64,000 nucleotides of DNA, taken from positions 186,001 through 250,000 of the IMG/VR virus record IMGVR_UViG_3300032334_001259. The stretch is one strand, 5' to 3'. The position numbers were made by a program, and so were the translations under genes. Position 1 is the stretch's first letter, and each line of letters opens with the position of its first letter. This document shows positions 14,425-59,798 of this stretch, in pieces. The notes beneath the pieces are model-generated. The model saw nothing but the letters and a program-made list of their open reading frames with translations, was not told where the DNA came from and made no database searches.

Positions 14425-15685
14425 CTATAACGGCAAAGAACCAATTAAAATTGCTGTTGACGATTTAACAGATTCTCAAAAACATTTAATCTTTGAGAAC
14501 AAATCATTTTGTATGTATCCTTGGATTCATCTTCATGCATTTCCAACAGGAGAAGCATATCCGTGTTGTAATACCGAGATGCCTGAACTTGTAGGTAACA
14601 CTCGCCATAATACAATAGAAGAAATTTGGCATGGATCGGCAATGCAAGATGTTCGTAATAAGATGCTTGCTGGTGAACCAGTAAAAGGTTGCAGTCGTTG
14701 TTATGAGCAAGAAGACAATGGTTTTTTCAGTATGCGCATGAGTGCTAATAAACACTTTGGACATCATATTGCACTGACAGACAATCCCACACCGCCAATG
14801 AAAATGATTTATTGGGATATACGTTTTAGTAATTTATGCAATCTTCGTTGTCGCAGTTGTGGTCATATCTTTAGTTCAAATTGGTATGATGATCAAGTTA
14901 AACTTGCAGGTGAAGAGTGGGGAAAAAATAACAAACGTATCAATTTTGCTGGTCGCAATGAAGATGATATTTGGAATCAGCTTGAACCGCAGATTGATAA
15001 TCTTGAACAAGTATATTTTGCTGGCGGTGAACCACTTATCATGGAAGAACATTACCGTTTGCTTAAAGAACTTATTAAGCGTGGTCGTCACGATGTTCGT
15101 CTCATTTACAATACAAACTTTACACAAACAGTTTATAAGAAAACAAATGTGTTTGAACTTTGGCGTGAGTTTAAAAGTGTAAGTGTTGGAGCAAGTTTAG
15201 ACGCAATGGGTAAACACGCCGAGTATATTCGCAAGAATACGGTATGGGCAGATGTTGAACGCAATCGTGAAGAAATGTTAAAGATATGTCCACGTGTAGA
15301 TTTTTATATAAGTCCAACATTAAGTGTTATGAATGCATTACACTTACCTACTTTTCATCGTGATTGGGTAGAACGTGGATTTTTAAAACCGCAAGATTTA
15401 AATATTAATATATTGCAAGATCCACCTCATTATCGTATTGATATACTGCCATTTCAATATAAAGTTGATGTGCAAGAACTTTATTTGGAGCATATTGATT
15501 GGCTTAAACCCCAAGATTACCTGAAACGAGCAACTGCTGGATTTGAAAGTGCAATTAACTTTATGATGGCAGATGATAAGAGTAATTTGCTAGAAAAGTT
15601 TATTACTAAGACAGTTCAACTAGATAAGATACGAAATGAAAATATTTTGGAATCCATTCCAGAAATGAGATTTATTCATGAATAA
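14414..15685 (+). CDS. Radical SAM protein 3
   Basis: CNLRCRSC, AGGEP; N-terminal FCMYPW...PCC...CSRC. Confidence 0.9.
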   Translation: MAYNYNGKEPIKIAVDDLTDSQKHLIFENKSFCMYPWIHLHAFPTGEAYPCCNTEMPELVGNTRHNTIEEIWHGSAMQDVRNKMLAGEPVKGCSRCYEQEDNGFFSMRMSANKHFGHHIALTDNPTPPMKMIYWDIRFSNLCNLRCRSCGHIFSSNWYDDQVKLAGEEWGKNNKRINFAGRNEDDIWNQLEPQIDNLEQVYFAGGEPLIMEEHYRLLKELIKRGRHDVRLIYNTNFTQTVYKKTNVFELWREFKSVSVGASLDAMGKHAEYIRKNTVWADVERNREEMLKICPRVDFYISPTLSVMNALHLPTFHRDWVERGFLKPQDLNINILQDPPHYRIDILPFQYKVDVQELYLEHIDWLKPQDYLKRATAGFESAINFMMADDKSNLLEKFITKTVQLDKIRNENILESIPEMRFIHE

Positions 15686-16841
15686 TTTTTGTGTATTACC
15701 ATTTACTAGTATTGAAGCAGATCCAATGGGTAAATGTAAGGTATGTTGTTTATCAAAAACTACTATACCAAATATTGACCTTAAAACTAATACATTAACA
15801 GAAGCATTTAACAGTGATTACATGCGTAATTTAAGACAACAATTTTTACAAGATGAAAAACCAAGTGAATGTGAACGTTGTTGGACAGAAGAAGCAAGTG
15901 GACGCACTAGTAAACGTATGCACAGCACTATGCGACTTCAAAAAATTTTGCAAAATAAATCTTTTACTAAAGATACTGATGGTGAACTTATTTTTCTTGA
16001 TCTTAAACTTGGAAATATTTGTAATTTGAAGTGTAGAATATGTGGTAGCTTTAGTAGCAGTAAATGGGCACAGGAAGAAATTGATATATTTAAAAATAAC
16101 AATACAGCACGTGAAAATCTTGAAAATGGACGTTGGCCACGTGAAGCAAACAATTTTTGGAAAGATTTAGCAGATTTATTATCAAATACAAAATATTTTG
16201 AATTTACGGGTGGCGAACCATTTCTTATTGACGAACACTTTACATTATTAGAAATTGCAGTCAAGATGGGTTATGCAAAAGATATTGAATTGCATTACAA
16301 TACTAATACTACTACTTTTCCTAAACGTGGTTTAGAATTGTGGCCAAATTTTAAATTGGTTGAAATTGCCCTATCAATTGATGATATGGGTAAGCGGTTT
16401 GAATATCAAAGATTTGGAACAAAATGGGAAACTACTCTTGAAAATTTAGAACGTTTTAGACAATTAAGACAAAACAATAAAAATATAAAGCTACAACTGT
16501 GTTTAACTGTTAATGTACTAAATGTTTACTATCTTGATGAAATTTGTAAATGGATACCAAAACAAAAATTTAATTATGTTTATTTTAACGTATTGCATGA
16601 TGCCTGGTATTTTAGTATCAAACATTTTACTCAACGTGCTAAGGATTTAGTTAATGAAAAATATAAAAATTATACTGGTTTTTACGCTGATGAAATAAAA
16701 AATTTAATAACATTTATGAATCAGGGTGTTAGTAGTGATGGAACTGATTTGGTAAGAATACTTAAGCAAAGTGACATACAGCGTAATCAAAAGTTTAGCA
16801 ATTATCATAGTGAGATAGCGGCGGCAATTGGTTATGAATGA
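15678..16841 (+). CDS. Radical SAM protein 4
   Basis: CNLKCRIC, TGGEP; N-terminal FCVLPF...VCC...CERC. Confidence 0.9.
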   Translation: MNNFCVLPFTSIEADPMGKCKVCCLSKTTIPNIDLKTNTLTEAFNSDYMRNLRQQFLQDEKPSECERCWTEEASGRTSKRMHSTMRLQKILQNKSFTKDTDGELIFLDLKLGNICNLKCRICGSFSSSKWAQEEIDIFKNNNTARENLENGRWPREANNFWKDLADLLSNTKYFEFTGGEPFLIDEHFTLLEIAVKMGYAKDIELHYNTNTTTFPKRGLELWPNFKLVEIALSIDDMGKRFEYQRFGTKWETTLENLERFRQLRQNNKNIKLQLCLTVNVLNVYYLDEICKWIPKQKFNYVYFNVLHDAWYFSIKHFTQRAKDLVNEKYKNYTGFYADEIKNLITFMNQGVSSDGTDLVRILKQSDIQRNQKFSNYHSEIAAAIGYE

Positions 16842-18126
16842 TTTTTGTTTGGCACCTTGGACCCACACATATATATCACCACAAGGTGAGCGTAGGTTAT
16901 GCTGTGCATCACGAGAACCCGCACAAAATTTTAAACAGTATATTGACACTGAACACGGAAATGGTGAATTTCAAGCCTTAGCACTAGAGGAATGGTGGAA
17001 TGGTGAACATATTAGAAGAATAAGAAAAGAGTGGTTATCTGGAACAATCCCAAAAGAATGTGAAGTATGCGATAAAAAGTTACTTAATACTTCTGTTTAT
17101 CGTGATTACTTTGCTCATCTCTTCGGTCATTTACGGAAGGATATTATTTCTTCTACTGACCATGAAGGTTATACAACCATAGAACCAATATCCTGGGATT
17201 ATCGTTATAGTAATGTATGCAACTTTAAGTGCCGTATGTGTGGTGACATGTTAAGTAGTGCATGGGAAGTTGAAGTGCGTAAAAATGATATGGTTGACAT
17301 AAAAAATCCAAAGAACTATTGGATGCAACCAAAGAATCGCCATGCTATTCGTGATTTTACTCGTGATGTAGTAATACCAGAATTTCGTGAAGCTATAGAA
17401 AACAAAACTGTGCGTGAAATCTATTGGGTAGGCGGTGAACCACTATTGTATGACGAACACTGGACTTTCATGCGCCGCATCGTTGAATTAGGTTATGCAG
17501 ATCAGGTCCGTGTGCGGTATAATACGAATTTAAGTTATACTAAAGATAAAGATGGAACTCTTTGGGATTTATTACACCACTTTCCACATTGGGAAATATG
17601 TGCAAGTTTAGATGGAACAGGAGATATTGGTGAGTATATTAGAAGTGGTCTTAATTATAATGATTGGTTGGATAATTTTAAACAAGGAATCCAACATCAG
17701 CGACATGTTCGCCAAATGCGTATTGATTTTACTCTTACTTTGCCTGGTTTATATGATCTGGCCAATATTATTAATCTTGTTGATTCTCTTAATGTTTCCC
17801 TATTAAGTAAAGTAGTATTTGCTTTTAGCCCTGATATATTATTAAGTCCATTAGCTTTACCTCGTAATATATTAATACCACTTATAGAAAATATACAAGA
17901 AAATATAAAATCAAAAATAACTTACAGAACTCAAAGTTTGTGGGATGTATTGGAACATCTTAAAACTCGTCAAACTTTTGAAGAAGAATTTCCTGACAAT
18001 TATAAACAAGAGGCAAAACGAGGTAAGGCGCATCTTTTAAAATTGGAATCTATTCGTAAAGATGCTAAAATAAAATTAGAAGATATCTTAACTGGTGATA
18101 CCTTAGATTGGTGGAATAGTATATGA
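16834..18126 (+). CDS. Radical SAM protein 5
   Basis: CNFKCRMC, VGGEP; N-terminal FCLAPW...LCC...CEVC; start moved to ATG 16834. Confidence 0.9.
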   Translation: MNDFCLAPWTHTYISPQGERRLCCASREPAQNFKQYIDTEHGNGEFQALALEEWWNGEHIRRIRKEWLSGTIPKECEVCDKKLLNTSVYRDYFAHLFGHLRKDIISSTDHEGYTTIEPISWDYRYSNVCNFKCRMCGDMLSSAWEVEVRKNDMVDIKNPKNYWMQPKNRHAIRDFTRDVVIPEFREAIENKTVREIYWVGGEPLLYDEHWTFMRRIVELGYADQVRVRYNTNLSYTKDKDGTLWDLLHHFPHWEICASLDGTGDIGEYIRSGLNYNDWLDNFKQGIQHQRHVRQMRIDFTLTLPGLYDLANIINLVDSLNVSLLSKVVFAFSPDILLSPLALPRNILIPLIENIQENIKSKITYRTQSLWDVLEHLKTRQTFEEEFPDNYKQEAKRGKAHLLKLESIRKDAKIKLEDILTGDTLDWWNSI

Positions 18127-41828: not shown

Positions 41829-42182
41829 TTAAACGCTTTTTGGACGATTTTGACGGTCATGCTTTAATTTAGCAGCAAAGGCATCTGGGGTCAATTTATA
41901 TTTTGCAATAAAAGCATCATGTAAATCTTTTGGGTCAACTTGGAAAGCCACTGATATGTTTTGCATTAAATCATCAATGCTTGCATAATCTATTTGTTCC
42001 ATATCATCTAATTGGCTTCCAAGACGTGCAACAGCACCCATCATATTCTTACCTTCTACACCTCTTACAACAGTGTCATACTTCCAACGTGCTGCCATAA
42101 GACCACGTGCACCAGCACTTATAGGATTGCGTCCTTGAATCGTAGTGCTCATTGCTGCTTCAATAATTTCTTTAACTTTCAT
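41829..42182 (-). CDS. Putative internal head protein
   Basis: Leader MKVKEIIE-A; LHDAFIAKYKLTPD. Confidence 0.55.
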   Translation of the reverse strand: MKVKEIIEAAMSTTIQGRNPISAGARGLMAARWKYDTVVRGVEGKNMMGAVARLGSQLDDMEQIDYASIDDLMQNISVAFQVDPKDLHDAFIAKYKLTPDAFAAKLKHDRQNRPKSV

Positions 42183-43187: not shown

Positions 43188-43595
43188 TTAAACTTTACCA
43201 CTTGGGTCCATAATAGGCGGTAGACCTAACTTATTGGTTTTATTACCAAATTTGGCGGCTTGACGCTGTGTTTCGCCAGGTTTTATATCAACTGTCATGC
43301 TCATAGCATAACGTGGGTCTTTTGCCATCTTTTTATTGCCAGCAACTACGCCTACACCAGCAGATTCACGGTAAACTTTTTCGGCACCAACAGGGTTAAT
43401 CTTAAATCCCCACATCTTTAATTTATATAATAATTCTTCTTCATCTTGTGCAACAAAATCATATTTGTTTGTATAACCATAATAGGTTCCATTAGGACGT
43501 TTTGTTACATATGCAGTTTCGCCTGTGCGTGGGTTATCATATACAGTGGCGTAAGTTGCTTCGTCTAACTGTGAGAATAATTCGTTTAATAACAT
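43188..43595 (-). CDS. Putative internal head protein
   Basis: Start moved to ATG 43595 (TAATG overlap); leader MLLNELFSQLDE-A. Confidence 0.55.
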   Translation of the reverse strand: MLLNELFSQLDEATYATVYDNPRTGETAYVTKRPNGTYYGYTNKYDFVAQDEEELLYKLKMWGFKINPVGAEKVYRESAGVGVVAGNKKMAKDPRYAMSMTVDIKPGETQRQAAKFGNKTNKLGLPPIMDPSGKV

Positions 43596-44239
43596 TACAT
43601 TAAGTCCCATTTTTTAAGAGACCATTTTTTAACCATATCACGTGATAAATTTACTTTGGTTGATATCTCTCTTGCTGTTAAACCTTCATTTTTTAACATC
43701 TGAATAGAATCAAATTGTTCTTTCGTTAAACCACGACGAATCATCGCTCGTTTCTCTATAATTGATTTTTCCCACTTTACCCAAGGTTTTTTCTTACCTT
43801 TATGTGATTCTGATATTTTCTTTTTAGATTCTTCCGAATGAATTTTACCGTGCATTCTTGTATAATTTTTAGCAATGCCTTTTAATGCTCTACTTCTTTT
43901 TACATTTGACTCTTCTGACATAATTATGCCATTATTGCCATCGCCACCTTTTGTAGAATTATATCCATTTTTATAGGTATCAAATTTTTCTATAAGTTCT
44001 ATTTCTTTTTGTTTAGCAACTTCTGCGGAATCAACCAATTCTAATAATTCTATCTTCCACACATCAGTTCCATACTTGTTTATAGCATTGTAAAATTTTC
44101 TATTGTCACGAATTTTTATAGCATCTTTCTTATGCTGTTCAAATCTTTCAAATATGGTATTACCAGTAAAACCAATATATGATTTACCATTTACATTATT
44201 TGTAATTTTATAAACAGAATAGGTTTTTGCAATTACCAT
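43595..44239 (-). mobile_element. Free-standing GIY-YIG homing endonuclease with NUMOD3-type repeats
   Basis: SVYKITNNVNGKSYIG, RFEQH, GYNSTKGG, HSEESKKKIS. Confidence 0.85.
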
Positions 44240-45174
44240 GCACGGCAACTCCAATATCTTGCAGTTGTTCTATCTTTTGCTGTTTTGCAATTGTGTCTGG
44301 CTCTAAAAGACTTTCTGCGTTTTGGATTTGACCGCTTTATTCTCATTTTTTTGTCACCAAAATTTACTTTAATTACTTTGCCTGTTTTTGGATTTTTCAC
44401 GTACACTTTTTTCTTTTTAACATCGCCCTTCATAGGTTTGCCAAGTGGAACTTTACGACCATGATATTCTGCTTCTGCAACGAGTGATTCATGAAGTTCA
44501 TCCATAAAGAAACGAACTTCTTTGTCGCCTTTGTTAAGAACAATATCATCATCGTCTTCGTCAATATCCCAACCCATGTTGCTTAACATTTTTACGGCTT
44601 GGGCATGCTTACCTTCATCACCATGCCACCACATCTTTGCCAAACGTTTTAGAGTTTGGTGATTATCTTGCATAGAAACTACTTCACCTTCTGCTACACT
44701 ACTTTTCTGTGCGATTGCACGTTCTGCAGCTTGGTTGATGTCCTCACGACTTGCGCTATATGGGCTTACATTTAGCGTGGTGATTTCTTCGTATGCAGGC
44801 GTCATTTCATCATCGGTTTTTACAACTTTTTTAAGAAGATGATAATTTGTCTTACGAACATCATCAGACTCATGACCACTTGTTGCAATAAAATAATCAT
44901 CACGATAATGCTTTACATAATTGTTGCCACCAAAATCACGTTCTCGCCAAAGTTTTGCTTCACCAAGATATTTGGTTTCAATTGCGCCTAAACTTTCTAA
45001 TAAACCAAGTAATTTTTCATCACCAAGTAATGTAATACTTTCGTTATCCATTTCCATAATTTCAGTATCTACTTGTAGAATATTACTGAACTCAAGATAG
45101 ACACCATCACCAATGGTTGGACGATCTTCGCTTATGGCTGTAAGTTTTTCAATTAGGGAACGCATATCACTCAT
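44233..45174 (-). CDS. Putative head-packaged polyprotein with basic C-terminal domain
   Basis: Leader ending AISE; C-terminal KVNFG...SFRARHNC...ARYWSC; TAAATA at 45194-45199. Confidence 0.6.
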   Translation of the reverse strand: MSDMRSLIEKLTAISEDRPTIGDGVYLEFSNILQVDTEIMEMDNESITLLGDEKLLGLLESLGAIETKYLGEAKLWRERDFGGNNYVKHYRDDYFIATSGHESDDVRKTNYHLLKKVVKTDDEMTPAYEEITTLNVSPYSASREDINQAAERAIAQKSSVAEGEVVSMQDNHQTLKRLAKMWWHGDEGKHAQAVKMLSNMGWDIDEDDDDIVLNKGDKEVRFFMDELHESLVAEAEYHGRKVPLGKPMKGDVKKKKVYVKNPKTGKVIKVNFGDKKMRIKRSNPKRRKSFRARHNCKTAKDRTTARYWSCRAW

Positions 45175-48372: not shown

Positions 48373-48885
48373 TTAATTGTATCTCCCCAATTTTGCATAA
48401 CTGGAGAGTTCTCTTGCAACTTTTCCAAATTCACTGTCATTATACTTGATGCCAATGCCGCCAGCACTTTGCCAACTTGCAATGTTCTTGCCATAATCAT
48501 CTACAAGAATACAAGAATTACCACCCAATGTGGCAAACATTGCTTTATTATGTGTAAGTTCAATGTGGCGTGGTGGCATATCACTAAAGTGCATATTAAC
48601 CCAAGCAACCTTGCCTGGCGCACTACGTGGATCACCTGTTAGCGGTGAACTGCAAATATGATAACTGCCAAACTCTTTAATAACATGTCGCACTAACTGA
48701 CGAGCATGTGGAAGTAACGGTAGGTCAACCCAAAATGTAGGATGGTCACGGACCAACTGTAATTTTGCCTCTGGATTGTCTATATCTTTATAGTGGTCTT
48801 TTTTATCTAATCTGGCCCACTCACCAAAAAAATCAGCAAGAACGCCGTCCATATCAAGATAAACTCGGAATTTTTGGTATGCCAT
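48373..48885 (-). CDS. HAD-family 5'(3')-deoxyribonucleotidase (NT5C-like)
   Basis: YLDMDGVLADF, ICSSP, ILVDD; promoter TTGACA-17-TAGTAT at 48917-48945. Confidence 0.85.
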   Translation of the reverse strand: MAYQKFRVYLDMDGVLADFFGEWARLDKKDHYKDIDNPEAKLQLVRDHPTFWVDLPLLPHARQLVRHVIKEFGSYHICSSPLTGDPRSAPGKVAWVNMHFSDMPPRHIELTHNKAMFATLGGNSCILVDDYGKNIASWQSAGGIGIKYNDSEFGKVARELSSYAKLGRYN

Positions 48886-48948: not shown

Positions 48949-51900
48949 TTAAACTTCACGCAAAGACAATCTACCCGTCTCATATTCTCTTGTAAATGTA
49001 TCAAGAAGTGCTTGACCACCAGCTTCTTTATAGTGTTTTACCAATATTTCATATGCTTCCGTTGGTGTATCAGCACCAACTTCAATAAATCGATCAACAG
49101 AGGTATCTCTATATAATGCAAACACTTTACTTGCATTTGCACGACCAATACGGTCTACAATTACATTAGAACGCTGTGGCTGTGGTTTTGGTTGTGGTTT
49201 TGGTTTTCTTACACCAGTTTTATAATCAGTTGGTGTTACCAGATGATATGGTCCATTACCATTACTAATATTATTTGCAATGTTGCGATAACCGCCATTA
49301 TTAAGATTTGCTAATGCACTTTCTTCACTATCGCCACGAACACGAACAAATACAAAGTTATTTGTATCACTTACAACATAGAACTCAATCTTGCCGCTAC
49401 CAACAACAACAATGTGATTTATATCTTGCTTGCCTATGGCTTGACGTGCGTTTCTGCTGCCCCAATGCAATCTACGATTACCACGATAAACAATCATATT
49501 GTTATCAAATGCATTTGCATAATAATCAGCAATTTCTGCAACTTGATCTTGTGTATATTTTGCTGGATCAAAACGTGCAATAATATGGTCATCATAATCT
49601 TCAATGCGATATGCAAGAGTATTGTAAACCTGTTCAGCATTAGGTTTGCCATCCAAACCGTTTCGCTCAATTTTTATGATTTCACCATAAAGTGATGCAA
49701 TGTTATTATCACTATAATTATATCCTATAACATTCAAGTAATTTTTAACATCTTCTCTGCTAACATTTGGTATAAGATTTTTTACAGCTTCAAATTCTAT
49801 TTCATCAGTGTTTGCTTGATTTGGATAAAGTCCTAATCTGCTATACTCACGATTCTTTAAACCATTGCCCTGCATATAAATCGTTGTGACGTAAATGTTA
49901 AAATATGGGAACTTTAACAAATATGCTTGTGTATCCATATTGCGTTCATTTAGCCAATCATATGCAAGTTTAATCATTTCATATAGTTGTTCACCATGAA
50001 CTTCTACTACTTCATCACCTAATTTAGTTTCAATTTTAGCAGTAATTTTACCTTGACCGATTGGTTTAACTGGCTCACGTGACTTACGAACTGCTTGAAC
50101 TTGACGCACCAATTCTTCTTTGTCAATATCACCAGTAACATATTTTGCAAATATATCAACTGTGCTACTGTCTTTCTTTACGCTATCTACAATAAGTTTA
50201 TAAAACTTCTTGTGATATTCTTGTTTGCTATCTTCTGGATCAGCAGCCGCAGCCATAGCACGAACATAACGTAACATTGTGTTACGGATTTCATCATACT
50301 TTTCAAAGTAATTGCCACCAGCACTACGAAACTCAATATAATTAGACTTGATGTTTACACTTACGTAACGATCACCTTTAGTTCCACTGATAATTTTGTT
50401 TACTTCTCTATTAGTTTGGTCAAGTAAACCAGCACGTGCATCATCCAATATCTTTGGTAGTGACTTACGGAAATCACGTGTTTCTGTTGCTTTATATGCT
50501 TGGTCAAACATACTCTTTGTCCAACGGCTGTTTAGTCGTTCAAAACGGTCTAATACATACTTGTCACCAAGCAACAATATAAGTTTAAGGTGATTTATAT
50601 TTGCCATAGTTTGGTCAGGAACACTAACACCAATATGGAAACCTGTTGTGCGATTAGTATAATAACGGTTACGCTTTGCCCATGTGAATACGTTATTAAG
50701 TGCTTCAAGTGCATCATCAAGTAACATTGGTGGTGATACAAGTTCTACACCGCCATCTTCAAAGTCTTCTGGACTATCTAAACTGCTATCTGGTTCAAAT
50801 ATCCAGTAATCACCACGACTTGTGCCGTGATAACCACTGCTTTCAACTGCGCTATAACCTGTTGCATTTTCAAAACTATTCACTAAATCATCATAAGTTA
50901 CATCACCTGAACTACTGCCATCAGTCATATATGGCCAATCAAGACTATCAACATTTGTTTCACGATTAATGTAACGTGCAAAACCTTGCATTGTGTCAAT
51001 TTCGTGGATTCTTAAAAAGTCTTGCCAGTTTTCTTTATCGTTTTCATTTTCCCAATTTTCACGAACAGAAGATTCGGCTTCATCTTTTTGTTCTTCGGTT
51101 ACTTCACTGTAATCATCTACGCCTACTTCATCAGCAATTGCTTGTTTCCATTCATCGCTGTTTTCATATTCATAATATTGATCACTTACATAATCGCTAA
51201 AGTTTTCATAGAATGCTTCTAATGCACGTTCTACACTGCGACGACTATTGCCATAATCACCTTCTGTAAAGAAGTCTATAATCATACGTTGGCGATCTTT
51301 GTAAGTTTCATCTGCTGGAAAATCTTCATCTTGATCATAATCTGGCTCTGGGTCTTCTTCTTCACCTTGTAGACCAGGTACATACATTTCAGTTTCAAAG
51401 CCAACACGCATTTGTTGTGCAAACTCGCTCTTGGCAAATGCTTCCAAACTCTTTGGATTCATTTTTACTTCTGCAAGGAAAGATTCTGTTAGACTTTCTT
51501 CAATGCTTTCGTTGCGTTCTGGAACTGCTACAATAGTATAACCTGGTCCCATATTATGTTCAGTTGCCCAACTTTGTGCATAACGACGAGCAGCAGTTTC
51601 ACTTGCAGCAGTAAATGTATGGTAAACACCGCCCATACTACCTACAATATTATATGTAGTTTCTCCTTGCGGTGTAGCACGATGCTGTGCAATAATTAGT
51701 GGTGGTATTGTATTGCCAGCAATATCATAACCACGCTGTATTTCCCAATCTGCATATTGTCGTTGTTGTTCTGGTTGTGGTCTTGGTTGTGGAATTAGTT
51801 GACCTTGCGCATCCCATAGATTATTGTTGTTTGGTGTTCTAATTGCAATATTTGCTAATGATAGACCACGTTGTTGTGCAAAACTTTGTGCTGCTTGACT

Positions 51901-54900
51901 TGCTTGGTAAAAACTTCGTGCTTGTGTTGCTAATAATTCTGTGCCATCGCTTCGGTTTACAACAACATATGTTCCGCCAGATTGTTGTTGCTGTACTGGC
52001 TGTGCTGATGCACCGCCAACAGTTCTCCATTCCCACCTGCCATTTATAAGACGATTATCATCTGCCCATTGTCTTGCATATTGGTATGCTGCTGCTTGAC
52101 TGTCAGCAGTAAAACGATGAACAACACCGCCTTGCGATAGTATTTCAAATTGTTGTCCTGACTGTGATGCTTGTTGTGTTTCATTAGGTCTAAACAGATT
52201 GTATGAATCAAGTGCTATATTATTTCTATTTGCATATTCACGAGCTGCTGCAATAGCCTCTTGGGTAGTAGTATAAGTTCCTTGTGCAATTACTCTATCA
52301 CCACTACTGGTTCGCATTTGGAATACAGCGCCAGCAGTTTGGTATGGCATTTGCGGAATAGTTGCAGCAGTTTGTGTTTGTCCAACAGTTTGTGCATCTG
52401 TTTCACGGCGTGTCATAAATTGCGGAACATCAATCATTTCACCACTTGGTGCTTGTAGTTGAACACTATCAGGATAACCACCATCACGTGCAATTCTGCG
52501 ACCATAACCACGAGCACGATCCATTACATCAAGTAGTGTGCCAAACATAGTTACTTGACGTGAACCGTTTATAAACAACATAAAGTTTTGTTGTGCGTCT
52601 TGTGGTGTTTGTGTTTGTTGTGGTTCGCTACGGCGTGTTTCGTTGGCTGTAAAAACATTATAATATGTATTAACACCCATATAATTGTGTTTTAATTCAT
52701 AATTATTATAATTTACACCACGACCACGCAACCACCTAAATGCTAAATCAGAAGCATCGTATTTGTTATCTGCACGAACAATCTGCACTGCTAATTCTGT
52801 ATCTTTATAAACTATTTCATAACGATTGCTACCACTGCCAATACCAGTGTCACTTGCAACAAACGCCAGTGGTGGTAGTGCAGGCATTAAACCACTTACA
52901 TACGTAGCATTTTTCAAACGAACCAGCATTACATCTTGTAGATAATAGCCACTGTCACTGCTTGTCCAATTACGTGCATCGTCATAAACTTCATAAGGAT
53001 CATTGCCATAAAACTTTTTAAGAACTGTTCCGTTCTTGGTGCGAACTTCATATTCCTCTACACCAGAACCTTTTTTATCACGACTAATAGCACGTTTACG
53101 CTGTTCATTACGAACATGTGATAACAGTGCAGTCTTTGGAATAGTGCCGCTTACATATTGACTAAAATACTTGATTGTATCTGTATCTTCTTTTGGTGCA
53201 TTAGTTGCTAATAATTTATAAAACTTCTTTGCATATTCTTGCTTTTCTGCTTCTGGATCAATCGCAATACTCAATGCATAAACTGTGCGGTAAAGGGTGT
53301 TTATAACTTTATCTAAATCCATATCTAACCAATTACCGCCAGGACTACGAATCTCAATACGATTATCTTTGGTGTTGATACTGGTAAACTTATCAGTATT
53401 AGTATCGTGAATCATCTTACTAACAGTTTTGTTTAAGTTAGTGCGAATCATACTAATTGCTTGTTCTGCTTTGCCTGGATTACGCTTGATTACAGTGGCT
53501 ACTTTATCTAATGCACTTACTGCATAATTATTACCAAGACGACCGAATGTATCAAGAACATACTTGTCTCCTAAAAATAGTGCCATCTTTACATAATCAA
53601 GATTTTGCAAACTATAACCAGGCAGACTTACATTCATATGCAGACCAGTGGTTTTATTGGTATAAGCATTTCCACTCTTTGCCCACGCTGCAACTTTCTT
53701 TATAACATCTACCATTTGCGGAATAGTTAGTGGTGGACTTACAAACTCCCAACCTTCACCACCACGACCGCTGCTTGCATGCAAACTACTATCTGGTTCA
53801 ACCTTAAAGTAATTAGGTTTTTGGCGTTGGGTGTGATAACCACCACTTACTTGTATATCATAACCTACGGCTTGACTAAAACTACGTGCAGGCGGACCAT
53901 CGCCACGACCACGACTATTATCATAATCTGGTTCTGTCCAGTGCGGCCAATTTATAGTTCCACTAAAATAATTGTGAATGTCACTATATGTATCACCACC
54001 AATAACACTATCTAAAAAGTCTTCTACAAGTGAGCCGTCTTCGCTTGCTTTATCATACCACTTTTCATAGTTTTCACGAGTGAAGCGCATGTAAGCATCA
54101 ATTGGTGGTATTTCAGGAAATAGTTCACCTTGCTTTTCATAATCACGACCATAGGTTTTATCTAACCATACTTGATATCGTGTATCAGTTTGTCCACTTT
54201 CTTGACTATTTGCCCAATTATCAAACGCAATTTTAGCATAAGTTTCATATTCACCAGCAATACTTTCTTGAACTTGTTGTATATCACGGCGAGTATTATG
54301 GTCACCACGGAAGAATTCCATAATTGAATTTTGTAAATCAGTTAGATTATCTGCAAATATGTTTCCATCTTGGTCATAATCTGGTTCGCTGTCAAAGTCT
54401 TCGTATGGATCATAGTCATCGTCATCTTCAAACTCTGTAACGATAAGTTCAAACTCTAAACCAGCACGTGCAAGTGGCAATGCATCAACTGCTTTTTTAA
54501 GTGCAGTAGGACTCATTGCAACTTCATTTAATAATTCTTCTGTAATCAAACTATCGCCAAGCACTACATCTTCAAGCCAAGGAATCTTTGGACTTTGTTG
54601 ATCTCCACGTGGATATTCATCCCATGGAAACTTTGCTACTGCACGGTCAGTAAGAGTAGGACCACCACCAACTGTTCCAAGAATACTTGGTGCGTGTTCG
54701 CTTTGCTTTTGTGGTCCAAGTAAGCGCATAAACTTTACCTTGTCTCTTGGCATTACATAATCATAAGAAAGTTGGTTATCAATTGTTCCATCAATAATTA
54801 TATCTACTGCAATATTTTTGAATCCAAGTGCGGTTTGTGCATATACACGATAAGTCTTTCGCAGATCAGGCAACGTTCCTTGAACAAAGAATGTGACAGT

Positions 54901-57486
54901 TGCTTTTGCAAATCGCACATATCCAAGTTTAAATGCTGCTTCATATCCATCTATACCTTGGCTATGTAGATAACCTTCGTGATATTCTGGTGGAACATAA
55001 ACAACTTTACGATCAGGCAATATCCAACCATGTGTTTCATTTGGGTCAAGTGCTTCTTCAATGCTTTCAGCCTTTTGCATCCACTTACTTTTAATGTATT
55101 CAATTACACCCATAGTATCTTTAATATTATTCTGCTGCATGAATCGCACAATCTTGCGACCATTTTCATAATCAGTATCACCAGGCTTTCGTGAATTGCT
55201 TAATTCTCTACGTAAACCAAAGTCATCACCATCAATATTATAATAACGCAAGTCAAACAATATCTTGCTTGCTTCTTTGCTTAATGTTGAACGATTCTGT
55301 CCAAATAACAATTCAACATAAGGAGCCAAATAACTTTTTCTGCTATATTGCTTACGTGATGGTTGTGGACCTTTAAGGATATTCTTTGCCGCACCAATTG
55401 TAATACTCTTTGCAGTATTTTGTAATCTCCATGCTTCTTCATCGGCATAAAGATATGTTGGAATACCACGCTTTTTTGCAGCAAGTAATACACGGCGCAC
55501 CGCTGGACTTTGGAACTCATGTTGTTCTTTAATTAAAACATGAACACTCATTACTGGTGTAATTGCAATAGTGCCATCACGACTGAATACACGGTCTTCA
55601 CTTTCACGATGACGTGTAGTGCTTTGGTCATTCCAATAATCAATTGGTTTTACTTTATAATTTTGGTTTAACCAACGACCATTCAATACAAACATTACAG
55701 CACTATTACCAACATATTTGTGATAACCACCGCTACGACTGCGTGTAGTGCTTAAAAAGTATGGATAACCTTTTGGTTGTAGTTTATATTCCCAATCACT
55801 GCCAACAGTGTTGCTCAACTTAAACTCACCACTTGTTAATATTTCAGCGGCAGCAGTTGTTCCTGTGTAATGGTATAGAACATCAGTTGCTAATTCTGTT
55901 AGTGGTTCAACGCCTTCATCAAGTTGTGATTGTATACTTTTAACAATTTGTGGTGATGCTTTTCCGCTTGTCCATTCAGTTTCAATACTGCCATCAGGAT
56001 TCATCCAGAATAATGCTGCTTCACCATTGTCAATAGCATCAAGATAACGATCAGCAACATAGAAATTATGATGGAAATCATTTTCTGCAGCTTTTTCATA
56101 TGTATAGGTTGCTAATACATGACCATCACGTGTATCAAATACACCAATGTAAAATGGTTTACCACGGAAACTACCAACATTCTTGTTGGTGCTTTCTTCT
56201 AAATCTTTACGATGACTACGCTTGTAGTATGAACACCAACCATTAGGCGCAATCTTGCCTTTTACCGCACTACAACCATGAGGAGGACGCCACATAGTGC
56301 AGTGGTCGCAACGTTGACCATTGCGAGGCATTGCCTGATACTTTGCTTCGGCTTTGGTTGATTTTTCTGCGGCTTCTTCAACTTTCTTTTGTGCAAGATG
56401 CATTATATCTTTTTTAGGAACAACATAAACATCAATGGTTTTCTTGTTCTCTACATCAATCGCTTTTTTCATACGATTTAAACCATCAGCAACACTTAAA
56501 TGACCATCATCATTTTGTATTACAAGTAGCGGATAACGTGTGTCAGCATTCTGCATACGCTCACGCTGTGCTGCATTATCTTGCCACCAACTTAAATCGT
56601 GTTTAATTTTATCTAATGGAAAATTCTTGTGCAAATATTGTGGTTTAGATTGTGCAAACTTTAATACCGCTTCTACACTAAACTGATTGCCAGCATCATC
56701 GCCAAACTTACTACCGTGAAAGTAATCTTTTGCTTCATACTTTGGTAAACCGTATAAATCTAAATCAACACCGTGTGTAGAACCATAATAGGTATCATCT
56801 ACATTTGGTTTATATGGTTTACGACCAACCTTTACAAGTTTTGGTAAATCATCCCAATCACCACCAATGCCTGGTGCTTCTGTAATGTTTTCTTCAACTG
56901 CTTCGCCTAATCCCAAACCAATACGCACTGCTTGCATAAGTGTTTTGCCATCTACCATGATGTTTTGTGGGACTTGTGTAGCACGTTCAAAAGCATCTGC
57001 ATCACCACTCTTTGCTGCTTCACGTGCATTAGTAGCACTGGTTAGTCGTGGACTTTCAACAAATGTAAGTGGTTCAAATTTATAAAAACCGTGTGCAACT
57101 TCTTTGCCATTATATTGTTCAAGCACTGGACGCATACTTGCCATATCATCTTCGCCAGCAACAAAGGTTGCACTACGGAAACCTTTTTCATAAAGATAAG
57201 CAGCGGCTTGTAGGAATGTTTTAATATTTGGATCTTCTACGATATGACCTTTGGTTTCTGGATATAATGTATAAAGCCAACGTAGTTTTAAATCATATGG
57301 CAGTGGATTTTTTTTCTTGTCTTGTGACTTACTTAAAAATCCTGCCCATGCACCATTCTTTGCACTGGTAATTGTAGTTTGGATTAATCCCTGATGACCA
57401 AAATGTGGTGGATTTAGTCTGCCAAAGAAGAAAGAGATATGTGGTCCGCTTGCTTCTTTTAATGTGCTGTTAATAATTGTCATCAT
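48949..57486 (-). CDS. 2845-aa multidomain polyprotein: HIGH-type nucleotidyltransferase, ParB-like, HiPIP, ART-like, two amidoligase domains and repeat modules
   Basis: GRLNPPHFGH; VADGLNR; CDHC-x8-C-x12-C; YHYT/STT/ESE; two copies of GxExE...EPDSS...ExVSPP...TGxH...IExRSxGG. Confidence 0.8.
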   Translation of the reverse strand: MMTIINSTLKEASGPHISFFFGRLNPPHFGHQGLIQTTITSAKNGAWAGFLSKSQDKKKNPLPYDLKLRWLYTLYPETKGHIVEDPNIKTFLQAAAYLYEKGFRSATFVAGEDDMASMRPVLEQYNGKEVAHGFYKFEPLTFVESPRLTSATNAREAAKSGDADAFERATQVPQNIMVDGKTLMQAVRIGLGLGEAVEENITEAPGIGGDWDDLPKLVKVGRKPYKPNVDDTYYGSTHGVDLDLYGLPKYEAKDYFHGSKFGDDAGNQFSVEAVLKFAQSKPQYLHKNFPLDKIKHDLSWWQDNAAQRERMQNADTRYPLLVIQNDDGHLSVADGLNRMKKAIDVENKKTIDVYVVPKKDIMHLAQKKVEEAAEKSTKAEAKYQAMPRNGQRCDHCTMWRPPHGCSAVKGKIAPNGWCSYYKRSHRKDLEESTNKNVGSFRGKPFYIGVFDTRDGHVLATYTYEKAAENDFHHNFYVADRYLDAIDNGEAALFWMNPDGSIETEWTSGKASPQIVKSIQSQLDEGVEPLTELATDVLYHYTGTTAAAEILTSGEFKLSNTVGSDWEYKLQPKGYPYFLSTTRSRSGGYHKYVGNSAVMFVLNGRWLNQNYKVKPIDYWNDQSTTRHRESEDRVFSRDGTIAITPVMSVHVLIKEQHEFQSPAVRRVLLAAKKRGIPTYLYADEEAWRLQNTAKSITIGAAKNILKGPQPSRKQYSRKSYLAPYVELLFGQNRSTLSKEASKILFDLRYYNIDGDDFGLRRELSNSRKPGDTDYENGRKIVRFMQQNNIKDTMGVIEYIKSKWMQKAESIEEALDPNETHGWILPDRKVVYVPPEYHEGYLHSQGIDGYEAAFKLGYVRFAKATVTFFVQGTLPDLRKTYRVYAQTALGFKNIAVDIIIDGTIDNQLSYDYVMPRDKVKFMRLLGPQKQSEHAPSILGTVGGGPTLTDRAVAKFPWDEYPRGDQQSPKIPWLEDVVLGDSLITEELLNEVAMSPTALKKAVDALPLARAGLEFELIVTEFEDDDDYDPYEDFDSEPDYDQDGNIFADNLTDLQNSIMEFFRGDHNTRRDIQQVQESIAGEYETYAKIAFDNWANSQESGQTDTRYQVWLDKTYGRDYEKQGELFPEIPPIDAYMRFTRENYEKWYDKASEDGSLVEDFLDSVIGGDTYSDIHNYFSGTINWPHWTEPDYDNSRGRGDGPPARSFSQAVGYDIQVSGGYHTQRQKPNYFKVEPDSSLHASSGRGGEGWEFVSPPLTIPQMVDVIKKVAAWAKSGNAYTNKTTGLHMNVSLPGYSLQNLDYVKMALFLGDKYVLDTFGRLGNNYAVSALDKVATVIKRNPGKAEQAISMIRTNLNKTVSKMIHDTNTDKFTSINTKDNRIEIRSPGGNWLDMDLDKVINTLYRTVYALSIAIDPEAEKQEYAKKFYKLLATNAPKEDTDTIKYFSQYVSGTIPKTALLSHVRNEQRKRAISRDKKGSGVEEYEVRTKNGTVLKKFYGNDPYEVYDDARNWTSSDSGYYLQDVMLVRLKNATYVSGLMPALPPLAFVASDTGIGSGSNRYEIVYKDTELAVQIVRADNKYDASDLAFRWLRGRGVNYNNYELKHNYMGVNTYYNVFTANETRRSEPQQTQTPQDAQQNFMLFINGSRQVTMFGTLLDVMDRARGYGRRIARDGGYPDSVQLQAPSGEMIDVPQFMTRRETDAQTVGQTQTAATIPQMPYQTAGAVFQMRTSSGDRVIAQGTYTTTQEAIAAAREYANRNNIALDSYNLFRPNETQQASQSGQQFEILSQGGVVHRFTADSQAAAYQYARQWADDNRLINGRWEWRTVGGASAQPVQQQQSGGTYVVVNRSDGTELLATQARSFYQASQAAQSFAQQRGLSLANIAIRTPNNNNLWDAQGQLIPQPRPQPEQQRQYADWEIQRGYDIAGNTIPPLIIAQHRATPQGETTYNIVGSMGGVYHTFTAASETAARRYAQSWATEHNMGPGYTIVAVPERNESIEESLTESFLAEVKMNPKSLEAFAKSEFAQQMRVGFETEMYVPGLQGEEEDPEPDYDQDEDFPADETYKDRQRMIIDFFTEGDYGNSRRSVERALEAFYENFSDYVSDQYYEYENSDEWKQAIADEVGVDDYSEVTEEQKDEAESSVRENWENENDKENWQDFLRIHEIDTMQGFARYINRETNVDSLDWPYMTDGSSSGDVTYDDLVNSFENATGYSAVESSGYHGTSRGDYWIFEPDSSLDSPEDFEDGGVELVSPPMLLDDALEALNNVFTWAKRNRYYTNRTTGFHIGVSVPDQTMANINHLKLILLLGDKYVLDRFERLNSRWTKSMFDQAYKATETRDFRKSLPKILDDARAGLLDQTNREVNKIISGTKGDRYVSVNIKSNYIEFRSAGGNYFEKYDEIRNTMLRYVRAMAAAADPEDSKQEYHKKFYKLIVDSVKKDSSTVDIFAKYVTGDIDKEELVRQVQAVRKSREPVKPIGQGKITAKIETKLGDEVVEVHGEQLYEMIKLAYDWLNERNMDTQAYLLKFPYFNIYVTTIYMQGNGLKNREYSRLGLYPNQANTDEIEFEAVKNLIPNVSREDVKNYLNVIGYNYSDNNIASLYGEIIKIERNGLDGKPNAEQVYNTLAYRIEDYDDHIIARFDPAKYTQDQVAEIADYYANAFDNNMIVYRGNRRLHWGSRNARQAIGKQDINHIVVVGSGKIEFYVVSDTNNFVFVRVRGDSEESALANLNNGGYRNIANNISNGNGPYHLVTPTDYKTGVRKPKPQPKPQPQRSNVIVDRIGRANASKVFALYRDTSVDRFIEVGADTPTEAYEILVKHYKEAGGQALLDTFTREYETGRLSLREV

Positions 57487-57488
57487 AT

Positions 57489-57515
57489 AATCCAGATAAA
57501 ATATTTATCTGGATT
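57489..57515 (-). promoter_or_regulatory. Late promoter TAAATA inside a 12-bp inverted repeat that covers the polyprotein RBS
   Basis: AATCCAGATAAA-3 nt-TTTATCTGGATT immediately before ATG 57486/57483. Confidence 0.65.
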
Positions 57516-57941: not shown

Positions 57942-59081
57942 TTAGGTTGGTGTCCAACGATGTCTTGGAACCAATTTAACATTAGGTTCACCAGCTTTAC
58001 CATAAGCAACATAGCCCTCACCACCAGGCTCACCTTTTGTAGTTTGTGTAATGTCACTTAGTTCACTGTCAATTTGTTCAATAATATTATTCTTGATAGC
58101 ACGTAGATTTTCTAATACATTAAATGTAGCAAGGAATCCACGACTATTCTTGTTTACCCATTCAGTAATCTTATTCTGCATAGGAACACTTTGGCGACTG
58201 CTTGGTAACCATTCTAAAAACTTGTTAGCAAGTCCAGTTGTAATACCACTACGTGCCATTTGGTTGTTAAAATTATATAATACTTGCTTAAATCCAGACA
58301 TCTTCATAGCTGCAAGATTCTGGTCATTTAAGAAATTATCAATAGCAATCTTATTTGTGGCAACATACTTCTGTAAATTAGCAAGTGCAGTTGTATCTAT
58401 TTTTGGTTGTGATTGGGCATAACGTGGACCTAATACAATCAAGCCAGCAGTTTTATTAAATGCTGTAAAATCATTTATAGGTTGTTGCTCATCATCACTT
58501 AAACCAAACTCTGGGAAGTAAGCATGACCAACAGCTGCTGCTGTGCTTTTTGCAATACGTTGTCCAAGTTCACTATTTGCCTTAACACTGTATGTTACAT
58601 TGTTTGGTGTAAATGTGTAAGCACCGTCTTTAAGTGGTGGACGATTCATATAAAGTAAATCAGCATATACATAACCACGAAATTCTTTCGGTGTAGCTGC
58701 TTCAAATAGCGGCCAAAGGCTTGCAAATTGTGTAGCAAATGCTTGTCTTTGCTTGATTTCTTCTGGTGTTTCTGCTTTACCAGTTTGCATAATAAAACGT
58801 GCAAGGTCACCTGCACTTTGTGATTTACCATCTATGGTTCGTTTTAACCAACCGTTGTGACCAACCATGATGAATTTACCATCAGGTTCACGTCCCCAAT
58901 ATACTTGTGGTTTGCCATCCCATTTCCAACGAATATTTTGCTGTGGATTTTTGGCAATTTCTGCAAGTTTGTTTATTGCAGTAGTTGCACCCAAACTACC
59001 ACTTATAAGAACCAAGTCTTCAATATGTTGGAAAGCACGACCAACTTTTGGTGCTTCGGTAAGGATTTGGTTTATAAACAT
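57942..59081 (-). CDS. DUF6267-like protein with KxDG ligase/nucleotidyltransferase-like motif
   Basis: HIEDL, KWDGKP, YADLLY, GEGYV, KLVPR; leader MFINQILTE-A. Confidence 0.6.
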   Translation of the reverse strand: MFINQILTEAPKVGRAFQHIEDLVLISGSLGATTAINKLAEIAKNPQQNIRWKWDGKPQVYWGREPDGKFIMVGHNGWLKRTIDGKSQSAGDLARFIMQTGKAETPEEIKQRQAFATQFASLWPLFEAATPKEFRGYVYADLLYMNRPPLKDGAYTFTPNNVTYSVKANSELGQRIAKSTAAAVGHAYFPEFGLSDDEQQPINDFTAFNKTAGLIVLGPRYAQSQPKIDTTALANLQKYVATNKIAIDNFLNDQNLAAMKMSGFKQVLYNFNNQMARSGITTGLANKFLEWLPSSRQSVPMQNKITEWVNKNSRGFLATFNVLENLRAIKNNIIEQIDSELSDITQTTKGEPGGEGYVAYGKAGEPNVKLVPRHRWTPT

Positions 59082-59722
59082 TATAAAATATTTAGTTTGT
59101 TTTTTCTATATGGGCCACGAGATTTTCCTTTTCTTGCATTCCCCATTTTAATACGTGTTTCACTTGATAAAGTTCTTCCTTTAAGAGATGAACTTATTTT
59201 TTGTTTTGTTTCTTCCGAACGTTTTTTTCCTTTATTTGCATTACCTATTTTTTCACAAATTTCTTTATTGTTTGGGTTATTTTTCTTTACTTTGCTTAAT
59301 TTGGCACGATGCTCTGGTGATTTTATTTTTCCTTTTGTTGCAATACTTAAATTATCGCAATGTTTTTTGGAAAATATTCTGCCTTTTTGTACAATACTCA
59401 TTTTAATTCGTGTTTCTTTGGATGGTGATAATCCACTTATTCCATCGCCGCCATCTGTTTTATTATGTAATATACCAGTGCCAATATCTTTGCGACCATA
59501 CCACGCAATCATACGCCGTTCTATTGCTAATGCACCTATTTCGGTTAAATTATGTTCTAAAATAATAATATTATTTTTGTTTTTTGGTGTAGACGTATTA
59601 TAATGCTTTTCATATGCACGTCTATCTTTGCCTTTACCAATATAATATGGAGTTAAATCATCTGCTCTTATATAAGCATATACGTAATATCCGCTTGGCG
59701 GATTAGTGCTGGTAAATACCAT
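59081..59722 (-). mobile_element. Free-standing GIY-YIG-like homing endonuclease with NUMOD3 repeats
   Basis: YVYAY...[17 protein letters not shown], repeated SxETRxKMS; TATAAATA at 59780-59787. Confidence 0.8.
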
Positions 59723-59798
59723 TGCTGTGTTCCCTATAAACATAGAGTAGGTAGGGCTGCAACCCGTGACCTACACTATTATTTATAATTTAATTATA

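Follow-up and report, generated by a model that had tools for sequence, protein, structure and literature searches.

Two groups of phage proteins come close to the subject of this study, a gene for a 2845-residue polyprotein at positions 48949–57486 on the minus strand of a 64 000-nucleotide stretch (the window) of the IMG/VR virus record IMGVR_UViG_3300032334_001259 (positions 186 001–250 000 of that record). The first are the polyvalent proteins of phages and conjugative elements (Iyer, Burroughs, Anand, de Souza & Aravind, 2017; PMC5512222), in which one chain carries 2–15 distinct and unrelated conflict-type domains, including ParB and ADP-ribosyltransferase (ART) domains, with a rapid shuffling of architecture among relatives, and for which co-delivery with DNA was proposed. 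The second are the internal proteins of the T-even phages, which are diverse and share only a capsid-targeting sequence (CTS; PMC3012670), which reads MKTYQEFIAE in T4 (PMC8442874). In T4, the prohead protease gp21 recognizes L/I-X-E and cleaves behind its Glu, as first observed at a Glu–Ala bond (PMC9026906), and T4 Alt is a head-packaged ART that is trimmed by gp21 (PMC9026906, PMC3012670, PMC8442874); head-packaged ARTs in myoviruses are already an established idea (PMC9503650). The head ejection or inner-body proteins of phiKZ, 201phi2-1 and SPN3US also form a packaged protein mass in giant phages, and are cut by the prohead protease after x-x-Glu at redundant, stacked sites (PMC9026906, PMC5694885).

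The polyprotein combines the themes of the polyvalent proteins and of the T4 internal proteins and, to judge from its linkers, its relatives and its lineage, is most likely a head protein of the polyvalent, 'beads-on-a-string' kind, encoded by a T4-superfamily jumbo phage. As in the polyvalent proteins, at least seven domain types, in about ten cassettes, are strung on one chain, and the architecture is shuffled among 38 relatives, with differing cassette sets and one to four amidoligase modules. The chain differs from the polyvalent proteins in the absence of their anchors, as no MuF, zincin-like or other peptidase, DarA or ArdC domain was found in Pfam and PHROG scans of the whole polyprotein, and in its release, which is predicted to occur via a prohead protease at repeated CTS-like linkers and not by autoproteolysis. 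With IPI–III and Alt of T4 it shares a short N-terminal leader ending in hydrophobic-x-Glu; this leader, MMTIINSTLKE↓A (the arrow marks the candidate cleavage point), has the T4-type form of about ten residues ending in L/I-x-E and followed by a small residue. The T4 cargos are diverse, have the leader alone in common and are ejected to act early; whereas T4 uses one gene and one leader per cargo, this chain joins as many as ten cargos, with the leaders repeated as linkers within it, as known from sequence alone. The giant phages of the phiKZ type belong to another phage group and use another motif, S/A/G-X-E being that of the phiKZ-type prohead protease. Neither amidoligases nor high-potential iron–sulfur proteins (HiPIPs) are mentioned by Iyer et al. 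(2017), and the nucleotidyltransferases described there are of the Pol-beta type and not of the HIGH type (PMC5512222). Our literature search returned no description of a head-packaged enzyme polyprotein or of a CTS-delimited cassette polyprotein.

The window has a G+C content of about 35% and carries phage genes for a family-B DNA polymerase, an exonuclease, homing endonucleases and AAA+ chaperones. Because the DNA polymerase is 45–49% identical to those of Agrobacterium phage Atu_ph07, Sinorhizobium phage Phosso and the Rak2-like group 2.2 phages, and because an identical polyprotein product is encoded on a JGI metagenome contig of 338,435 bp (Ga0335335_10115891), the gene is assigned to an uncultivated jumbo phage of the T4 superfamily, in 'group 2.2' near Atu_ph07 (PMC7824862). 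When 6 kb of the polyprotein gene were searched against phage records at the nucleotide level, no match was obtained. An earlier sequence-only reading had described the gene as encoding a polyprotein of 2845 residues, and this holds: the single frame starts with ATG, has no internal stop, is open across 8.5 kb with normal composition and encodes a chain with a computed mass of 323 kDa and a pI of 5.4. The motifs quoted in that reading all lie at their stated residues of the translation, namely RLNPPHFGH (23), YPLLV (318), VADGLNR (332), HGWILPD (819) and the linker motifs listed below. Its count of at least six unrelated enzyme-like domains stands as regards number, with at least seven domain types present, and is to be narrowed as regards kind, since the enzymes identified are of four types (nucleotidyltransferase, ParB/Srx, ART and amidoligase) and the HiPIP is an electron carrier.

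Linkers, leaders and modular architecture

A search for long homologues gave the 38 relatives, on which ten segments of the chain were mapped and of which the N-terminal halves were aligned. The seven junctions at which xxE linkers had been proposed all keep [LIV]-x-E. The 2845 residues contain 22 copies of [LI]-x-E, and the linkers are enriched in the motif more than by chance because 11 of the 22 sit at junctions (at six of the seven; the seventh reads V-E-E, within K-V-E-E); one other copy ends the 11-residue N-terminal leader and one precedes the C-terminal region. As a sequence pattern, the linker motif equals the published specificity of T4 gp21. The leader (residues 1–11, 57454–57486; all features lie on the minus strand unless stated otherwise) is a candidate capsid-targeting and cleavage peptide from the alignment and from its likeness to the T4 CTS, and [LF]-x-E↓A is kept at about residue 11 in 8/8 aligned homologues.

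The first linker, J1, AVEENITE↓A (residues 196–203, 56878–56901), is conserved in 8/8 and 10/10 homologues; cassettes are inserted at it in P0002, P0003 and P0016–P0025, and each insert ends again in I-x-E↓A. J2, KVEE↓A (residues 368–371, 56374–56385; 10/10), is the site of an 86-residue insert in P0004, and J3, DLEE↓S (residues 428–431, 56194–56205; 10/10), precedes a cassette that varies among the relatives. J4, QLDEGVEPLTE↓L (residues 521–531, 55894–55926; 10/10), with QLDE at residue 521 and PLTE↓L at 528, fits the leader consensus of the free-standing ART proteins described below (E-P-L-T-E↓L-A-T-D; Glu at P5, Leu/Ile at P3, Thr at P2 and Glu at P1). J5, ESIEE↓A (residues 807–811, 55054–55068; 7/7), coincides with an indel of about 23 residues and with cassette deletions, and J6, LITEELLNE↓V (residues 980–988, 54523–54549; 10/10), corresponds to the leader of the second gene in relatives in which the gene is split. 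J7, ESIEESLTESFLAE↓V (residues 1993–2006, 51469–51510), is the family motif before the second amidoligase: ES[IL]EES[IL]LNE↓INMSP precedes every second amidoligase module in the family, and every family amidoligase module has [LIV]-x-E↓[VI]-x-M-[SN]-P before it, often in the stacked form ES-I-EE-S-I-LNE. The junction motifs are present in all homologues that have the position (7/7 to 10/10), also in those with other cassettes on either side, and inserted cassettes each bring their own copy (ENITE↓A, KPIGE↓A or IVTE↓A). The suggestion that linkers often stack several sites is borne out by the family alignment, in which candidate motifs are frequently two or three deep.

The relatives share a plan in which the N-terminal transferase is constant and the middle varies, with between one and four amidoligase modules, and the middle may hold additional PGDYG, DUF6934, DUF5661, GNAT, second ParB or NT5C cassettes; in close relatives cassette 4 is replaced or extra cassettes are inserted. 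Many phages carry the gene in split form, as two neighbours that lie 15 nt apart in the orthologous locus L089. Gain, loss and replacement of cassettes and fission of the gene all occur exactly at linkers. Genes for NT5C, a DUF6934 protein and two others that stand free beside the polyprotein gene are homologous to cassettes in the polyproteins of other phages. The comparison of domain content and order across homologues, which the sequence-only reading had named as a check, thus gave differing cassette sets with breakpoints at the linkers, and the segments behave as independent modules and not as one interdependent fold, as relatives insert, delete or swap cassettes or split the gene at these points. 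On this comparison the polyprotein is regarded as a chain of about ten self-contained cassettes.

Leaders of the same kind stand on free-standing homologues of single cassettes. A profile search with the ART cassette gave 1721 cluster representatives, many of about 290 residues with the domain beginning at residue 10–14. In 91/93 free-standing ART proteins [LIVMF]-x-E stands directly before the domain, with the Glu at residue 9 in 44 cases and at residue 8 in 19, Leu or Ile at P3 in 90/91, and commonly Glu (36), Gln or Asp at P5. Typical N-termini are MRAQEFITE↓ and MKISEILTE↓, the ART leaders being similar to M-R-x-x-E-F-L-x-E, and the pattern for free-standing cassette homologues is M-[RK]-x-x-[ED]-[FI]-[LI]-x-E; both the ART leaders and the leader of the polyprotein resemble the T4 CTS. 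The ART homologues of Dickeya phage JA11 and Pseudomonas phage Lu11 have no leader, which argues that the leader is a lineage-specific signal and not part of the ART fold. Free-standing transferases have a leader that ends in FLTE↓A in cyanophage ACG-2014f and that reads MKKFSEIIE↓A in Melnitz and MKNIKDILE↓A in Stenotrophomonas phage DLP_6, the last of which also ends in a ParB domain, and stand-alone amidoligases have KKLTE↓LKMN in Atu_ph07 and KLSE↓LKMD in RsoM2USA. In the split relatives the second gene starts with MKNDKDLILEEILNE↓VNMSP; the fused gene retains this leader, minus its first residues, as J6, and the sequence after J6 matches the second gene of the split relatives and not the amidoligase of the first gene. 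The linkers look like fossil N-terminal leaders of formerly separate genes.

Predicted packaging and cleavage, and the alternatives

That the polyprotein is packaged in the head and cut at its linkers is the reading that we favour, and on the sequence evidence we hold it to be reasonably probable. The cassettes would once have been separate genes, as they still are in other phages, each with a T4-type capsid-targeting leader ending in [LI]-x-E, and gene fusion would have turned these leaders into internal linkers. The N-terminal leader would then direct the whole chain of 323 kDa to the core of the prohead, a prohead protease of the gp21 type (S77) would cut after the Glu of every linker, and a fixed-ratio set of proteins of about 7 to 115 kDa would be left in the head (predicted pieces of about 21, 19, 7, 11, 32, 20, 115, 59 and 38 kDa), from which the pieces would be ejected with the DNA to act early on host or phage nucleic acids, nucleotides, NAD or proteins. 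Fusion would give fixed ratios by a single targeting event, and cutting would give pieces small enough to leave through the tail. The cleavage and packaging of this protein, together with an action of its modules on the host in takeover or anti-defence, we infer from sequence patterns. The fusion of internal-protein genes so that one leader loads them all, a protease separates them again and a fixed-ratio kit is delivered would be an undescribed way of arming a virion, and the chances of this are, in our estimate, about even; an equally balanced judgement applies to the kit consisting of a DarT-like nucleic-acid ART, an iron–sulfur carrier, a nucleotidyltransferase, a ParB/Srx enzyme and amidoligases.

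An S77 prohead protease is expected in this phage from its lineage, in which the group 2.2 phages (Atu_ph07 and the Rak2-like phages) all carry an orthologue of T4 gp21 (PMC7824862); that of Atu_ph07 is gp204 (PMC6102473 supplement). The stand-alone amidoligase of Atu_ph07, gp196, is encoded two genes from the portal gene and was detected in virions by mass spectrometry (14 peptides, 30% coverage; PMC6102473 supplement). The neighbouring gp195, annotated as a 'nucleotidyltransferase', is not homologous to cassette 1, and a conserved transferase–amidoligase pair in Atu_ph07 was dropped as a candidate. The gp21 homologue of Atu_ph07 starts with MSTKLTE↓H (L006 1586–2218), and in the major capsid protein of that phage (L006 9734–10963) ALLE↓G stands at residue 18; both are compatible, at the level of sequence, with the same cleavage rule in the lineage.

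Several points weigh against packaging and cleavage. The motif is short, and eight further copies of [LI]-x-E lie inside domains; the motif before the amidoligases could alternatively belong to the module itself, as its first helix. For the T4 CTS, action at the N-terminus is established, and recognition at internal sites is an assumption of the model. T4-type cargo is small and basic, which the whole chain is not: it is acidic, unlike the T4 internal proteins, and the only basic pieces predicted are the ART (pI 9.5) and the HiPIP (pI 9.4). The Atu_ph07 virions were purified with PEG only, and a topoisomerase subunit was likewise present in their proteome. The 64-kb window does not include the prohead protease and capsid genes of this phage, and the contig Ga0335335_10115891 was not among the matches listed in a metagenome scan with the Atu_ph07/RsoM2USA protease alignment, nor among those listed in a protease protein search and an IMG/VR scan with P0217. 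Furthermore, the polyprotein gene sits among genes for replication, chaperones and nucleotide metabolism and not in a head module.

The gene neighbourhood, with DNA polymerase, exonuclease, NT5C, ClpB and DnaJ in place of head genes, and the outcome of the protease scans would both suit a cytoplasmic multi-enzyme that is neither packaged nor cut, that is, a scaffold of nucleotide, NAD and amide-bond enzymes acting in replication, for example in DNA or nucleotide modification, with the acidic linkers as flexible tethers that contain L-x-E by chance. The constancy of the transferase and of at least one amidoligase in the family hints at a shared pathway, and the NT5C and GNAT cassettes of relatives would fit with it. 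However, a cytoplasmic scaffold leaves unexplained the conserved CTS-like leaders of 8–10 residues on free-standing cassettes, the retention of the motif beside changing cassettes and the presence of gp196 in Atu_ph07 virions, and the order and content of the cassettes are too variable for an obligate assembly line. We therefore consider it unlikely.

No more probable is that the chain is packaged and injected as one uncut giant protein, in the style of the polyvalent proteins or of the N4 virion RNA polymerase, with the motifs as functionless relics of leaders. Polyvalent proteins are described as multidomain chains delivered with DNA, and the N4 enzyme is packaged unprocessed (PMC5512222), and the chain contains no peptidase domain of its own. 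Relics would decay, yet the motifs are 100% conserved among relatives whose identity elsewhere is 35–57%, and stacks of two or three are frequent, which mirrors the site redundancy reported for phiKZ propeptides. A folded chain of 323 kDa would moreover be hard to pass through a tail tube, and a gp21-type protease in the same prohead would meet the linker sites anyway. That the long frame is an artefact of assembly or gene calling that joins neighbouring genes, as the two adjacent genes of several relatives (15 nt apart) might suggest, is highly improbable, as independent samples contain the fused form as well (P0002, P0003 and P0004; 3002–3071 residues, 57–90% identity), the frame is open over its whole length with normal composition and the in-frame junction keeps the leader of the second gene.

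If packaging and cleavage at the linkers are correct, short and readable [LI]-x-E leaders and linkers would mark the injected proteins of many uncultivated giant phages, and sequence alone would yield a catalogue of candidate early effectors, including DarT-like ARTs, virion-borne amidoligases and a phage HiPIP. The DarT-like ART family comprises about 1,700 clusters, with no functional annotation on the phage or viral matches seen, and this widespread CTS-tagged family would then be head cargo. The capsid-targeting principle of T4, known for small individual proteins, would then also cover a 323-kDa precursor that dismantles itself; the joining and splitting of genes at leaders would offer a concrete evolutionary route for polyvalent proteins, and such linkers could serve to load several cargos at fixed ratios into T4-type capsids.

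Individual cassettes

The list of domains in the sequence-only reading proved essentially right, with most calls confirmed and two segments left without an identity. Cassette 1 (residues 12–203, 56878–57453) is, as proposed, a HIGH-motif nucleotidyltransferase ('cytidyltransferase' in T4-like phages), with PPHFGH at residues 26–31 and a match to the PHROG cytidyltransferase at 3.8e-32. Residues R22, P25, P26, G29 and H30 are invariant in the family alignment; Pfam CTP_transf_like was reached by the homologue P0033 only, cassette 1 itself having no direct Pfam match, and a PDB profile search with the transferase gave no significant match. Cassette 2 (residues 204–371, 56374–56877) had been called a ParB-like segment; the similarity was recovered, and the description is corrected to a conserved mini-cassette of 48 residues followed by a ParB/Srx-like domain (PDB profile matches, PHROG 17560). 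A profile of this domain with its paralogues matched SbnI (1.9e-5), ParB 4umk (1.6e-3) and Spo0J (1.1) in the PDB. The canonical DGxHR is absent, with DGLNR in its place and DGTHR or DGHHR in relatives, and cassette 2 is 34% identical to the DGTHR cassettes of P0017 and P0028.

Cassette 3 (residues 372–431, 56194–56373) was recognized as a HiPIP from PDB PioC (6xyv, E 6.9e-8), NCBIfam Iro (4.4e-9) and its Cys pattern, in agreement with the earlier call; the matches lie below the curated cutoffs (Pfam HIPIP 1.4e-3, 19.3 bits versus 22; NCBIfam 36.5 versus 100, an equivalog cutoff). The pattern C-x2-C-x8-C-x12-C is formed by Cys 393, 396, 405 and 418 (56233–56310), and these four cluster ligands are the only cysteines in the 2845-residue chain. 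The HiPIP cassette is the best-conserved segment in most relatives, with 90–97% identity, and has 58% identity in P0024. Cassette 4 (residues 432–531, 55894–56193), to which no function was assigned, was delimited by mapping on the relatives and is present only in P0002 and P0003 among those mapped, with different cassettes in its place in relatives.

Cassette 5 (residues 532–811, 55054–55893) has an ART fold of the DarT/Tpt1 type followed by a helical C-terminal domain. Sequence-based PDB searches with these residues gave no match, and the assignment comes from an AlphaFold model built from an alignment of 126 family members (pLDDT 94.4). In a Foldseek search of the PDB this model matched Thermus DarT (7omw) best (E 6e-5, probability 1.0), with DarT matches including that from M. 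tuberculosis at E 6e-5 to 9e-4 and probability 1.0, followed by Tpt1 at 4e-3, and the earlier call of an ART-like domain is thus borne out by predicted structure; in a viral structure library all relatives of the model are 'uncharacterised'. Among the 126 sequences S48, R51, E97, E99 and R101 are invariant and H8 and Y57 nearly so, and the conserved His, Tyr and Glu-x-Glu fit an ART of the H-Y-E type. The likeness to DarT and Tpt1 in fold and in these residues is accompanied by differences from DarT: the identity is about 12%, the target-normalised TM-score is about 0.47, the cassette carries in addition a conserved helical domain at its C-terminus, and no DarG-like antitoxin partner was found among the neighbour annotations of the polyprotein. 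Because the nearest folds are those of DarT and Tpt1, the cassette probably ADP-ribosylates nucleic acid, as far as the model can indicate. The helical half (55243–55431) has a weak, non-significant match (E 0.09) to the T4 15-kDa RNA-polymerase-binding protein (PDB 8k58 chain G); a similarity of this kind, though non-significant, would fit an Alt-like action on RNA polymerase. The contigs with P0084, a free-standing ART protein, did not extend far enough to show its gene context, and the annotation of Lu11 was uninformative.

Cassette 6 (residues 812–988, 54523–55053), the 'HGWILPD' domain, was mapped from the relatives and has no assigned function; its final 55 or so residues (EHA.SILGTVGGG...FPWD) are retained in relatives without the remainder. 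No family or fold lead was obtained for it, a search for free-standing versions gave one fragment only, and a protein atlas gave only sub-threshold leads (0.75–0.79) for cassettes 4 and 6.

The two amidoligase modules (module 1, residues 989–1510, 52957–54522; module 2, residues 2007–2514, 49945–51468) bear out the earlier calls. Pfam Amidoligase_2 (PF12224), a family of glutamine-synthetase-like COOH–NH2 ligases (Iyer et al., 2009, as cited in PMC7824862), matches over two stretches at 6.4e-14 and 52.8 bits, above the curated cutoff of 22; a PDB profile search gave no significant match. Module 2 is assigned by paralogy with module 1, the two being true paralogues with 30–42% identity (residues 981–1507 versus 1999–2511). 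Both have all 17 residues that are invariant across 21 aligned modules, including the acidic, His and Arg residues E23, E25, D244, E259, H295, E390 and R392 as well as S246. In contrast to known Amidoligase_2 systems, no partner domains of the amidotransferase or hydrolase types accompany these modules in the Pfam and PHROG scans, the modules precede arrays of beta-beta-alpha-beta domains and the Atu_ph07 homologue is virion-associated. Beyond the ART, the activities predicted from the folds would be nucleotide transfer, ParB/Srx nucleotide chemistry or DNA binding, electron transfer and ATP-dependent amide-bond formation.

The segment between the amidoligases (residues 1511–2006, 51469–52956) had been read as repeats. 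It is repeated, but not as a simple repeat: iterated HMM searches and AlphaFold showed a string of at least five copies of a beta-beta-alpha-beta mini-domain of about 35–55 residues with Q/P-rich spacers. The HMM found five copies here and 95 family-wide, the first (at residue 1477) straddling the boundary of amidoligase module 1, and there is no L-x-E between copies. The AlphaFold model of the mini-domain has a pLDDT of 82, with no significant sequence or fold match in the PDB and a weak similarity to DUF2188 below the Pfam cutoff. The C-terminal region (residues 2515–2845, 48952–49944), mapped from the relatives and without an assigned function, is preceded by WLNE↓R, in which L-N-E ends at residue 2514, and is conserved in P0002–P0004 only.

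Neighbouring genes

The upstream neighbour (57942–59081) is a DUF6267 protein (Pfam, 4.8e-26) with the leader MFINQILTE↓A, which is conserved in the orthologous loci L089 and L091; PHROG 455 covers both the DUF6267 protein and the transferase, which are fused there. The downstream neighbour (48373–48885) is an NT5C 5'-deoxyribonucleotidase (PHROG 2643) that is 60% identical to residues 1533–1692 of P0033, in which Pfam NT5C was found. NT5C is a plain free-standing gene here, carries the N-terminal extension MRISEVVAHQE in L089 (20538–21071) and forms the last cassette of the P0033 polyprotein (residues 1515–1692), after MIVSE↓E. Many flanking genes on the minus strand at 41829–62855 have CTS-like leaders (MFINQILTE↓A, MRYSEIIGE↓D, MRINDIIVE↓T, MKMEDVLGE↓A and MKVKEIIE↓A), which are conserved in L089 and L091. 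A strict leader pattern was found in 6/20 genes around the polyprotein and in 1/43 elsewhere in the window (Fisher p 0.003), and the polyprotein may be surrounded by a whole locus of head-packaged proteins, as far as these leader sequences indicate.

A perfect hairpin with a 10-bp stem, TCCAGATAAA-TAT-TTTATCTGGA (57491–57513, minus strand), lies between the stop codon of an upstream gene for 133 residues and the ATG of the polyprotein, and overlaps the only GGA able to serve as the ribosome-binding site of the polyprotein gene. The core of the T4 late promoter, TATAAATA, occurs once in the 64 kb, against 9.4 copies expected, at 59780–59787 (minus strand), and 37 nt downstream of it lies the homing-endonuclease gene with which the gene run into the polyprotein begins; the use of this copy as timing evidence was dropped, as its position is not conserved in L091 and is too near the start codon in L089. 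This homing-endonuclease gene (59081–59743, minus strand; PHROG 314, with a faint NUMOD3 match) is at a different place in L089 and absent in L091, and the region is, by this sequence comparison, plastic; a second gene of this kind (GIY-YIG/NUMOD3) lies at 43595–44254 on the minus strand. Elsewhere in the window, at 15678–18126 on the plus strand, two adjacent open reading frames of about 390–430 residues with Cys-rich N-termini stand in a run of overlapping plus-strand genes.

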